A DNA stretch of 64,000 bases from Guillardia theta CCMP2712 (lineage: Eukaryota; Protista; Cryptophyta), in NCBI RefSeq assembly GCF_000315625.1, contig NW_005434672.1, positions 1,023,374 through 1,087,373 on the forward strand, in the 5' to 3' direction. Position numbers and translations under genes: made by a program. The notes beneath the pieces were generated by a model that was not told the DNA's origin, searched no databases, and saw only the letters and a program-made list of their open reading frames with translations. Shown one piece after another: positions 32,740 through 36,482 of this stretch. How positions within the stretch are numbered: position 1 is the stretch's first letter; each line of letters begins with the position of its first letter.

Positions 32740-33540
32740 GGTCTCGCTCCTTGATTGAACCATGCGAGCTGATCTGAGAAGCAACCACTATGCCATCGAC
32801 TCAGGTATTGCTGGGCAAAACATCAGTCGTGGTCAAGGCAACACAAAAGAGCTCGTCAGATATGATAATGCATCTCCCTGACTACTTGCTTCTTCCTTCA
32901 TGCCGATGACACGCTCAAAAAATCATCTCTTAATCGTCTCCCACAACCCTCTTGTCTGTCCTCTGTCTATCCCATTCCCACCACTGCATGTATCGATCCT
33001 ATCATTCATCTCTCAGGGTAAGCTGTCTTCCTTCCCTCCGCCTGACACCACTCCTGGCCAAGCTTCTTCTCTCCCTCCTCATGTGCATGTTACACTCGCC
33101 TGATAGTCCCCTCATATCTGCCTCCCTTCCATCCCTCGCTCCATTCGAAGTCCTTATCCTCTGCTTCCCTGCCATCGTTGTGTCCCTCACTCTCCCTCTC
33201 CTCCTCCCCCCTCCATCTTCTTCACATCCGCTCCTCCTCTTCTCTCCTCCTCTTCTCTCCTCCTCCTCTCTCCTCTCCTCCTCTCTCCTCCTCTTCTCTC
33301 CTCCTCTTCTCTCCTCCTCTTCTCTCTTCTCTTCTCTTCTCTTCTCCTCCTTCTATCCCCTGCCTCAAATCCTCCCATCTCGCCATATCCGCTGCTGACG
33401 AATTCCAGAAGCCATCACGTGAGCCCTCATCCCCTCCTTGCCCTTTCCACCTCGCCAGCTGTACCTGAGGCGGGCTTGTTCTTCATATGAATTTTACAGG
33501 GTTGGCCCGCCGACTCGTGGGAGGCCGTGGGGGGCGGGTA

Positions 33541-34337
33541 ATGGCGATGCGAGGCAACGATGGGCGCGGATCAGGAACATCCGCAAGGCCCCTCCTCCTC
33601 CTCCTCCTCCTCCTCCTCCTCCTCGCTATCAAGATCGATCATACGATCGCTCTTGTATCCTCCTCAAGCATGCCTGCCAAGAGGAGCTCACTGCTGCCTC
33701 GGGAATGTAGCGCTCTCAGACTGACCGGCGGGCGACCCAAGGATGAGGACAGTGATGAGGAAGAGAGCAGAGAGAAGTCGACGTCATCTGCAAGGTCCGA
33801 AACGGCAGAGTCGCTCAGAGAGTCAGCTAGAAGAAGAGCAGAGCGGGCCAAGAAGGCTGGTGATCCGGGAAGGACCAGTATTTCGAGGACATTGAATCGG
33901 GTTTTCTTCTCTATGACCAACAAGTTGGGTCTGACGGGATCATCCACGACTGTGATAAGTAATATCAATTGCTTCTTTTCATCACATCTTGCATGGAACT
34001 CGTGACATGATCACCCAGCCTCGCTCAATCTGCGTACTGACCGCTTACACAGATGGAAGAGTGGTGGTGCGACGTAACATTATTCAGAAGTTCTTTCACT
34101 TCATCTACTTGTTCTTTCGCGCCTTGTACATGTTCTTCAAGACGCTCTTCATGGTACCGTGTCTATCTGTTGCGTGCTCGCCTGGTACTCACTGCATCGC
34201 CGCAGCCCACTGCAAGTTGGAATCCTCAGAAACCTTCTTCGGGAGGAGGGCGCGGCTCCTTCAGCTCGTTACGCGCCAAGGGGGCCAACCAGATGCGATT
34301 AGCCGATCTGCCGCCGATGCCTGGCGGCTGAGGTTAA
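33541..34337 (+). CDS. SELENOK: Selenoprotein K with Sec encoded by in-frame TGA (34329-34331) and a long N-terminal extension; exons 33541-33958, 34053-34153, 34206-34337
   Basis: The spliced product ...TTVINGRVVVRRNIIQKFFHFIYLFFRALYMFFKTLFM|PTASW...GGGRG...LPPMPGG-U-G-TAA parallels SelK (ISNGQVL...FVVLFFKTLL...PPPMAGG-U-GR). A SECIS-like hairpin lies downstream. Confidence 0.88.
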
Positions 34338-34504
34338 GCCCACAGAGATCGAGAGGTGAGAGATATGCCGGAGTGACGTCAGTCTGAATCTTGACGGCAG
34401 GATGGCGCTAGCGGAAGGTGTTCCGCTGACCCTCCTCCTTCTCTGTGGGCGAAAAACTCGGCTCGTTGCAGAAACGATCCCGCAACGACGACATCGTCTT
34501 GTAG

Positions 34505-34562
34505 TCGCCCGCTGACGCGAGCGGAGGCAACCCATGAAGGATCTCCGCTGCTGAGGGTGCGA
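34505..34562 (+). promoter_or_regulatory. Eukaryotic SECIS element (type II-like) in the SelK 3' UTR
   Basis: Lower stem tcgccc/gggtgcga; core cTGAc...tGAg; upper helix gcgagcggagg/tctccgctgc; AA 12 nt after the core; apical cc...gg mini-stem. Folded by hand. Confidence 0.75.
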
Positions 34563-34700
34563 GGAAAGTCCTGCAGCATCAACTTTGTATGTTTGTCGAT
34601 ACTTTCGTATGTAAAGCAAGTACAGACACACACGTTCAAGATGAAAACTATCTTTAATCAACATATCGTTACGAGGGAAAAACACAGGAGCTAGTATAGT

Positions 34701-36482
34701 TTACTTGCCGAGGCGCTGGAGGGACTCAACAGGGTTGTAGAACTTGGCATCCTTGGGGATGTCGGAGCGAAGGTTCTGCTTAACCAAGCTGCGAACAGTG
34801 TTGAAGAGAAGCTTCAAGTCCTCGACGGGGCCCCCGGAAGTGACCTTCTTGTACAAGTAGGAGTCGAAGGTAACCTTCTGGACGTACTCGCTCTCACACA
34901 TCTCAACAAAAGCCTCACGGGCCGGGTTGGAGCGGTAGAAGACCTGCTGCAACACGTCGAGGACGGCGTAGGTCGGTCCGTAGAGCTGGTCATAGCGTCT
35001 CAAGTAAGTATCCTCAATCTCCTCCTGGGTGGGAAGAACAGTTCCTCCCTGTGTGAGCTTGGTGATGGCCTCAGCAGCCATGCGGCCAGACTTCGCAGCA
35101 AAGTAGATTCCCTCTCCAGAGCACTTGGTGACGTAACCAGCAGCATCTCCAACAAGTGCAGCACGATTGAGAACACGCTTGGGTCTGTAGTGCTCAGGAA
35201 TAGGGTGAGCCTCAACCTTGATAATCTTTCCTCCCTCGATCTTCTTGCCAGCGCGCTCGCGGATAGCGTTCTGGTATTGCTTGATAGCAGGTCTGTTCAC
35301 AACAGTTCCAGTTCCGACACCAACGTGGTCGTACTTGGGGAACACCCAACCGTAGAAGTCAGGTGACACGTCATCGCCGACGTACATCTCAGCGAGCTCC
35401 TCATAGAAGGCCATCTGCTGATCATTGATCCTGATACGCTCCTGGAAGGCAATGGCATAGTTGTACTCGCCAGCATCGATCGCCTTGGCAACGCGAGAGT
35501 TGGCGCCATCAGCTCCAATGATGAGATCGACATCGAGCTCCTCGGGGGTTCCGACCTTCTGTCCGTTGTAGTTGGTGTAGTGAATCTTGTAGGGCTTGGT
35601 CTCGGAGTTGCCCTCGGGAAGGTCGATACCAGTGACAAGGCCATTGATGGGCTTGGCACCGAGCTTGATGGCGCGATCGCGGAGGAAACCATCGAGGATC
35701 TCACGCCTTCAGGTCAAGTTAGATCGAGATCCACAACGACATCCAGTAGCACCTGGTCATGCCGATATACTCGTCGTCTCTGAGAGTCTGACCAATGGGT
35801 GCCTCTTTGCCAGTGGGGGAGATCATAAGCATCTTGCGAACCTTGCGGTCGACCACCTCTTCAGGAATCTGGAACTCCTCGATCATGCACAGAGGGATAG
35901 CTCCACCGCATGGCTTGGCATTGTCCATCTTCCTCTCGAAGATGTAGGTGTCGATGTTGGGCTCCTGAGCGAAGATCTCCGCAGCGCAAGAGCCGGAGGG
36001 ACCACCACCAACAATGGCTACTCTCATCTTGCGATCGCCGTCCCACTTGTGACCCATGGTAGGGGCAATGGAAGCACGTCCACGGCGGCTGACCATGGCA
36101 GCCCTGAACCTCGGTGTCAGAGACCAGTTACTCGATCGTGTAAGTTTGGCACTACCTTCGTGGAGCACCAATGGTAGAGGGAGAGCTCATGAAGGCATCA
36201 GTCTGAAGGATTTCGAGTCAGATTTCAGTCGGTTCACCATTATGCGGAAGAGAATGAATTGCACATCGCATCAAATTTGTAGCAAGTGAGCCAAAAGAAA
36301 AATTGTGACACACATCACAGACGGGGTCTTGGCACGATCCCGTCACAGAAACATGAGAGAAGGAACCCAGGAACAAGCAAGAAGGACTACAACAAGTAGA
36401 TTCGAACAAGGTTGGGCAAGGATCACGACGTCACCTGAGCAGCAAAGCCAAGAGCAAAGGCAAGGGCGGTAGCTCTCAGCAT
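34701..36482 (-). CDS. chlP: Geranylgeranyl reductase (chlorophyll/phytol synthesis), plastid-targeted; multi-exon
   Basis: MRVAIVGGGPSGSCAAE, NAKPCGGAIPLCM, DVSPDFYGWVFPKYDHV and LVGDAAGYVTKCSGEGIYFAAKSGRM. Presequence MLRATALAFALGFAAQ|TDA-F. Confidence 0.95.

Follow-up and report, generated by a model that had tools for sequence, protein, structure and literature searches.

A predicted selenoprotein K gene with a conserved in-frame UGA codon and a noncanonical SECIS element in the cryptophyte Guillardia theta

Introduction

Selenoprotein K (SELENOK) takes part in endoplasmic reticulum (ER)-associated degradation (ERAD) in mammals and serves there as a cofactor of protein palmitoylation. Members of its family (SelK_SelG, PF10961), such as human SELENOK and Chlamydomonas SelK1, combine an N-G-x-V motif, one transmembrane segment ending ...FFKTL, a Gly/Pro-rich tail, a penultimate selenocysteine (Sec, U) in a ...PPM-x-GG-U-G ending, and a selenocysteine insertion sequence (SECIS) element in the 3′ untranslated region (3′ UTR). 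The human protein ends PPPMAGGUGR. Selenoprotein S (SELENOS/VIMP), another small selenoprotein of the ER membrane, also combines a Gly-rich tail with a penultimate Sec. Here we analyze a 64,000-nucleotide stretch of the Guillardia theta CCMP2712 genome (contig NW_005434672.1, positions 1,023,374 to 1,087,373, forward strand; hereafter, the window), in which a three-exon gene at 33541 to 34337 on the plus strand very probably encodes a functional SelK whose in-frame UGA is read as Sec by means of a SECIS element in the 3′ UTR.

The gene and its predicted product share the SELENOK sequence features listed above. Its transmembrane-proximal motifs are those of SelK, and unlike SELENOS/VIMP it gave no SelS family match in any scan. 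It departs from textbook SelK, a protein of about 90 to 100 amino acids with a short N-terminus, in carrying an N-terminal extension of about 135 residues (about 216 amino acids in all from the ATG at 33541), in Pfam scores that lie at or just under the gathering threshold, and in having C rather than A before the core UGA of its SECIS element. The hairpin itself resembles eukaryotic SECIS elements of type 2 (RF00031) in that its core is a kink-turn with tandem G.A pairs, helix II measures about 10 bp, and both an unpaired AA and a small extra apical helix are present. It differs from the norm in its CUGA core, a one-base bulge in helix II, and the lack of an Rfam match; the SECIS elements of the TXNRD and SelT-like genes of the same genome are canonical (AUGA, 11-nt spacing, AAA). 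The recoding mechanism would be the standard eukaryotic one, and we regard the locus as calling for a correction of annotation rather than as a new kind of biology.

Guillardia theta is reported to have 14 selenoproteins in 12 families, and SELENOK to be among the least widely distributed algal selenoproteins (PMC7539508). Our literature search found no paper linking Guillardia with SelK, and the present gene may add a family to the published count if that count omitted SelK.

Gene structure

The mechanical list of open reading frames (ORFs) ends this gene at the TGA at 34329 to 34331. A preliminary description of the locus, made from the DNA letters and that list alone, had proposed that the frame continues through this codon to a SelK-type PPMPGG-U-G-stop terminus, and positions 34311 to 34337 do read CCG CCG ATG CCT GGC GGC TGA GGT TAA. 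It had further proposed that two GT-AG introns restore a SelK-like core; with both removed the frame is intact, and alignment to orthologues is gap-free over both junctions. The gene structure is as follows.

33541 to 33958, plus strand: exon 1, coding; N-terminal extension and first SelK-domain residues (...MTNKLGLTGSSTTVI, phase 1), its frame in phase with exon 2.
33592 to 33624, plus strand: (CTC)11 microsatellite, in frame; encodes a run of 11 Leu, the hydrophobic core of a signal-peptide-like N-terminus.
33959 to 34052, plus strand: intron 1, GT...AG, 94 nt, from the sequence; junction backed by an alignment with spliced or intron-less orthologues that has no gaps.
34053 to 34153, plus strand: exon 2; NGRVVV motif, transmembrane segment, and FFKTLF.
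34154 to 34205, plus strand: intron 2, GT...AG, 52 nt, from the sequence and the orthologue alignment.
34206 to 34337, plus strand: coding part of exon 3; Gly-rich tail ...LADLPPMPGG, UGA (Sec), GGT (Gly), and TAA.
34329 to 34331, plus strand: in-frame UGA, the predicted Sec codon; residue 215 of the 216-amino-acid protein that starts at 33541, or residue 91 of a minimal 92-amino-acid protein.
34335 to 34337, plus strand: true stop codon TAA, from the sequence.
34338 to 34590, plus strand: 3′ UTR, its 3′ end only estimated, from the 31-mer shares of RNA-like contig sets.

The spliced product is ...MTNKLGLTGSSTTVI|NGRVVVRRNIIQKFFHFIYLFFRALYMFFKTLFM|PTASWNPQKPSSGGGRGSFSSLRAKGANQMRLADLPPMPGG, followed by UGA, Gly, and the stop, and the intron joints yield ...TTVI|NGRVVVRRNIIQKFFHFIYLFFRALYMFFKTLFM|PTASWNPQ...PPMPGG; the product thus ends ...LADLPPMPGG-UGA-GGT-TAA. 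The expectation that standard gene calls would truncate such a protein was borne out, as the mechanical ORF list and the database entry for the closest relative, from the cryptophyte Hanusia phi, both stop at the UGA. Reading this codon as Sec would restore the residue thought to be catalytic.

Orthologues and family membership

The closest database protein, found via the upstream ORF in frame with exon 1, is a 204-amino-acid Hanusia phi entry in EukProt (P0001). It is 71% identical, without gaps, to the exon 1 region over 108 amino acids and likewise ends ...LADLPPMPGG, and exon 3 is 90% identical to it. Since exon 2 and intron 2 are read in the +1 frame in this entry, the database model represents an unspliced transcript. 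Its residues 109 to 163 are wrong, and its C-terminus is truncated at the UGA. An exhaustive HMMER search with the Hanusia phi protein as the query gathered spliced or intron-less relatives (P0002, P0003, P0004/P0011, P0006/P0021, and the partial P0009), each in a different 50% cluster. These orthologues are 154 to 197 amino acids long and come from five other marine eukaryotes, and every relative that reaches the C-terminus ends ...MADLPPMPGG. A hidden Markov model (HMM) of the orthologues scores the spliced window protein at 217 bits over about 180 residues, from residue 35 on and with no frame breaks; because this alignment has no gap at either exon junction, both introns are validated by homology.

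Membership in the SelK family is supported by motifs, and the Pfam profile scores are borderline. The Pfam SelK_SelG profile matches the full-length orthologues at 16 to 25 bits (E = 3e-5 to 2e-2), covering positions 6 to 86 of its 86 positions in five of six and extending only to 52 to 54 in P0003; one SelK-domain cut scores above the Pfam threshold of 23.3 bits, and the remaining orthologue scores fall just below it. In the ESM Atlas, all three of the closest clusters are SelK, which we take as a lead only. All orthologues conserve the N-G-x-V motif followed by a single transmembrane segment with an FFKTL-like end (...VINGRVVVRRNIIQKFFHFIYLFFRALYMFFKTLFM...), and in the Gly/Pro-rich C-terminal tail a single Gly codon separates the UGA from the true stop, within the one or two residues usual for SelK proteins.

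Searched genome-wide (87,145,349 bases in 669 contigs), a profile of the orthologue SelK domain detects this SelK-type locus alone, with 61.3 bits for exon 2 and 45.8 bits for exon 3. A weak match of the profile on contig C30, considered as a second SelK, proved to be a spurious low-complexity frame, and a PF10961 search over the whole genome returned low-complexity false positives only. One source of false weak SelK matches is a repeated element present at two or more loci (L005 on G000:C27 and L006 on G000:C84), with the frame ...LVELFTGVFSFLVLFFVTVENS....

Other searches for relatives were negative within their scope. A collection of 5.8 billion proteins, queried with exon 2 and exon 3 words and with the upstream ORF, held no model containing these exons; the ESM Atlas gave no usable match to exon 2 alone; the PDB held no solved relative; and no encoding contigs were found for the Hanusia phi protein or for P0007. 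In the P0005 group, contigs L036 and L037 carry exons 1 and 2 and no recognizable exon 3.

The UGA-Gly-stop ending

The preliminary description had made its reading depend on orthologues keeping a TGA-GGN-stop ending, and this ending is indeed conserved. Encoding contigs make it directly readable in four independent groups, in which ...CCN GGC GGN is followed by TGA, GGN, and TAA or TAG. Third positions vary in the upstream codons, and the Gly codon after the TGA varies likewise (GGC, GGC, GGA, and GGC, versus GGT in the window), while the second stop is constant. A wobbling Gly codon with an ever-present second stop argues that the UGA-Gly ending is translated, as a plain stop does not predict these features. 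A fifth group, metagenomic (L038, positions 1139 to 1340), reads TGA G|GTAGCC...CTGCAG|GC TAA; here the Gly codon seems to be split by an intron ending ...CTGCAG, which would leave the Sec codon and the stop in different exons.

Conservation continues beyond the stop codon.

34338 to 34347, plus strand: GCCCACAGAG, the ten bases right after the true stop; invariant in five lineages (the window, L026, L029, L030, and L033).

Coding wobble positions differ among these same five lineages. Around the stop codon, RNAalifold predicts pairing of UGA-GG with CC-CA, for which the invariance of every position leaves no covariation to be seen. The element GCCCACAGAG may be a recoding or termination context element and could pair with UGA-GG.

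A SECIS-type hairpin in the 3′ UTR

A hairpin with SECIS geometry, placed by the preliminary description about 170 nt past the stop, is present at 34505 to 34562, 168 nt after the TAA. Its parts are as follows.

34498 to 34568, plus strand: SECIS element, type 2-like, from geometry, covariation, and covariance-model matches.
34505 to 34510 with 34555 to 34562, plus strand: helix I, from the fold.
34512 to 34516, plus strand: 5′ core CUGAC, from the fold.
34517 to 34527 with 34542 to 34551, plus strand: helix II, 10 bp and one bulge, from the fold.
34529 to 34530, plus strand: unpaired AA, 12 nt after UGAC, within a CAA at the 5′ side of the apical region.
34552 to 34555, plus strand: 3′ core UGAG, opposite the UGAC at 34513 to 34516.

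From the UGA codon to the SECIS core the distance is 184 nt, which exceeds the 51- to 111-nt minimum UGA-SECIS distance (PMC3753652). Our own geometry scan, which required NUGAN and GA, with helix II no shorter than 8 bp and an AA 9 to 14 nt in, found this hairpin as the sole candidate between the stop codon and the convergent gene ChlP. The two strands of the window, 128 kb in all, contain 25 instances of a relaxed form of the SECIS pattern, and a stricter version occurs twice, one of the two being this hairpin; given this rarity, a chance match in a UTR of about 360 nt is unlikely, though possible on counts alone.

We observed matching hairpins in every orthologous 3′ UTR fetched (n = 5), 250 to 420 nt after the UGA codon. 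Reading from the 5′ end, they consist of CCC-A/G, CUGAC (AUGAC in one of the five), the first strand of a helix II of about 10 bp, C/G-AA, a small helix at the apex, the second strand of helix II, and U/C-GAG-GG. Covariation is evident even when five sequences are aligned by MAFFT alone, with no fitting to structure: standard pairs make up 86% of the cells of helix II, versus 38 to 54% when the partner is slid by 1 to 3 columns, seven of the ten pairs have changed on both sides, and none of 500 shuffles reaches the observed values.

Covariance models built from some of these elements find others. A model of five elements including that of the window (R2) finds an unseen sixth, in L038, at 23.2 bits. 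A leave-one-out model trained solely on the five other organisms (R3) matches the window at 34498 to 34568 with 38.6 bits (E = 7e-8), the next match in the window scoring 8.3 bits, and gives exactly one match in the whole 87-Mb genome, at this hairpin. A covariance-model hit had been named beforehand as a check on the hairpin, and the result is split, with R3 matching it and the Rfam model SECIS_1 giving no match. An earlier two-sequence model (R1) was dropped as overfitted, scoring 62 bits on the sequences that it was trained on and 7 bits on a further, true SECIS. A literature search for SECIS elements with a CUGA core returned nothing relevant; the conserved CUGA core would represent a natural SECIS missed by the standard covariance model and could be useful for tuning SECIS predictors.

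Transcript data are compatible with a message that includes the hairpin. Of the words sampled from 33400 to 34700, about 0.6 occur in small, RNA-like contig sets from several studies, compared with 0.63 estimated for a spliced transcript of about 33600 to 34640, and these sets contain 0.76 to 0.79 of the sampled 31-mers of 34332 to 34640. These shares fit a 3′ end near 34580 to 34600, beyond the hairpin, and other layouts or a contribution from ChlP are possible. In another species, 1.3-kb transcript contigs (L026 to L028) unite the coding sequence, the TGA GGC TAA ending, and the SECIS in a single molecule.

Selenocysteine decoding in the genome

The Guillardia theta genome clearly decodes Sec. 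It contains a tRNA-Sec gene (72.9 bits; anticodon TCA by ARAGORN), SepSecS (423 bits), and SelD (290 bits), along with other selenoprotein genes. Two TXNRD genes end ...SGC-UGA-G-stop (L015, G000:C9, minus strand) and ...AGC-UGA-G-stop (L016, G000:C115, plus strand), and each is followed by a canonical AUGA SECIS, with Rfam scores of 27.2 and 24.4 bits that are below threshold. A Sec-containing GPx (...NLASK-UGA-GLT...) lies at about 1500 to 2017 on the plus strand of L023 (G000:C23:675850-679173). Neither Rfam nor our own scanner found a SECIS within 1.3 kb downstream of this GPx, whose element may be either noncanonical or further away, nor within 1.3 to 1.5 kb downstream of a TGA-containing match to the Rdx family (PF10262) at L018.

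On L008 (1500 to 1664, minus strand; G000:C65), 5 nt separate the tRNA-Sec gene from a tRNA-Ala(AGC) gene of the same orientation. Elsewhere in the genome, L017 carries at 1501 to 1563 on the plus strand (G000:C107:204324-204386) a canonical-looking SECIS, AUGAC...GAAA...UGAA, which scores 21.5 bits; no selenoprotein ORF was identified upstream of it.

N-terminal extension and start codon

Ahead of the SelK domain the gene encodes a conserved extension with a signal-like hydrophobic start. About 100 residues before the SelK core are common to the gene and its relatives and include the motifs ...RRAEQAxxAG... and ...KTxYRVFFSxTNKLGLTGSST.... A start at ATG 33541, where the region taken in the preliminary description begins, is plausible because the in-frame upstream ORF is conserved as protein. 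In the protein that starts there, hydropathy peaks at residue 18 (2.41), orthologues P0002, P0003, and P0021 have N-terminal hydropathy peaks at the same place, and a conserved ...LR(L/M)xGG... motif follows the hydrophobic stretch. This signal-like start, as in three relatives, and the motif after it lead us to favor ATG 33541, from which the product would be 216 amino acids long with Sec at residue 215. In-frame alternatives at 33487, 33670, and 33913, the last giving a 92-amino-acid product, are possible but not favored. The simplest reading of the topology is that a cleaved signal peptide places the longer N-terminal domain in the ER lumen and that the usual SelK orientation is kept. The conserved N-terminal domain would define a SelK subgroup.

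A hydrophobic, signal-like N-terminus in this alga and in three orthologues could also be the first part of a bipartite, signal-plus-transit-like leader. A Sec-containing SelK would then be directed to the periplastid compartment or membrane of the complex plastid and would serve the symbiont-derived ERAD-like translocon (SELMA) rather than host ERAD. In mammals, Derlins and p97 are partners of SELENOK in ERAD, and components of this kind make up SELMA. We consider this destination unlikely. The extension is acid-rich, with motifs well conserved across orthologues that are less than 50% identical, and it resembles a functional domain rather than a transit peptide; a long lumenal N-terminal domain already needs a cleaved signal peptide for the usual SelK topology; and the Hanusia phi model begins downstream of the hydrophobic stretch. 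With one SelK-type gene detectable in the genome, there is no pair of host and symbiont SelK, which also weighs against a periplastid role. On a broader and equally doubtful proposal, the gene would belong to an undescribed SelK subfamily of several marine protist lineages, marked by the signal peptide, the domain of about 100 residues, and the CUGA SECIS, and in cryptophytes the only SelK could work at the periplastid membrane or the ER around the plastid, as a selenium-dependent component of the ERAD-derived SELMA import machinery.

Discussion

The features described above point to a Sec-containing SelK. In the mechanism that we propose, three exons would be spliced into an mRNA in which the UGA at 34329 to 34331 is bypassed as a stop. 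The kink-turn SECIS, about 184 nt downstream in the 3′ UTR, would recruit a SECIS-binding protein and the Sec-specific elongation factor with Sec-tRNA(Sec); Sec would be inserted, one Gly added, and translation terminated at the TAA at 34335 to 34337. The predicted product is a single-pass ER-type membrane protein with a Gly/Pro-rich, probably cytosolic tail ending ...PPMPGG-U-G and, ahead of the SelK domain, the conserved extension of about 135 residues with its signal-like hydrophobic start. By analogy with mammalian SELENOK, it may act in ERAD and as a cofactor of protein palmitoylation.

Several observations weigh against this interpretation. The folding energy of the hairpin is no better than that of shuffled sequences (z = −0.42), so that its support lies in geometry and conservation rather than in stability. 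The base before the core UGA is C (34512), versus A in four other SECIS elements of the genome. Four of the five orthologues also have C at this position and one has the canonical A, and the preceding A is not part of the core as defined by UGAN/KGAW (PMC3753652). The 3′ core UGAG departs from KGAW at its last base, and the SelT-like SECIS of the genome likewise has UGAG. Rfam SECIS_1 gives no match on the 3′ UTR even at E ≤ 10; as it scores four clear SECIS elements of the genome at only 21 to 27 bits versus a threshold of 35, its silence here carries little weight. Against the window exons, scanned one by one, Pfam SelK_SelG scores exon 2 alone at 9.9 bits (profile positions 8 to 41) and does not match exon 3 alone, the short length of single exons weakening such scores. 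Homology and k-mer shares are the basis for the junctions and the 3′ end. With regard to the Sec machinery that the preliminary description had expected, tRNA-Sec is present, as noted above, while the eukaryotic elongation factor (EFsec, or eEFSec) was not clearly identified, the bacterial SelB model matching generic GTPases only; nor was PSTK, whose model has one exon-sized match of 29.8 bits in the genome, nor SBP2, for which no dedicated search was made.

Some of these points would also be expected if the UGA were an ordinary stop, so that a selenium-free protein ended at ...PPMPGG and the hairpin were an unrelated 3′ UTR element acting, for example, in stability or localization. Recoding is deduced here from sequence comparison, the hairpin has no Rfam SECIS match, and its CUGA core is noncanonical. 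We nevertheless judge an ordinary stop very improbable: in every readable orthologue the Gly codon wobbles among GGT, GGC, and GGA with a second stop directly after it, a signature of translation; the hairpin is conserved in its UGA/GA core and AA spacing, its helix II covaries, and one orthologue has canonical AUGA at the same place; and the genome decodes Sec elsewhere. That the locus is a decaying gene or a chance alignment of ORFs in GC-rich, repeat-rich DNA, as its low-complexity setting and the lack of a gene model in the protein collection might suggest, is scarcely credible given the 217-bit match to the orthologue profile, in which 180 residues align with no break of frame, the 90% identity of exon 3 to Hanusia, and the roughly 60% of locus words held by RNA-like contig sets, as expected of a spliced transcript.

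Neighboring sequence

The surroundings of the predicted SelK gene are of low complexity, with CTC repeats. Long CT-rich microsatellites adjoin the gene upstream (window positions 33200 to 33340) and sit inside it (33592 to 33624). The tract inside the gene, (CTC)11, keeps the frame and encodes the poly-Leu core of the putative signal peptide, and its length may be polymorphic. The convergent neighbor is the last exon of the geranylgeranyl reductase gene ChlP (34701 to 35414, minus strand; TIGR02028, 354 bits). Only about 360 nt separate the stop codons of the two genes, and their 3′ UTRs may therefore overlap.

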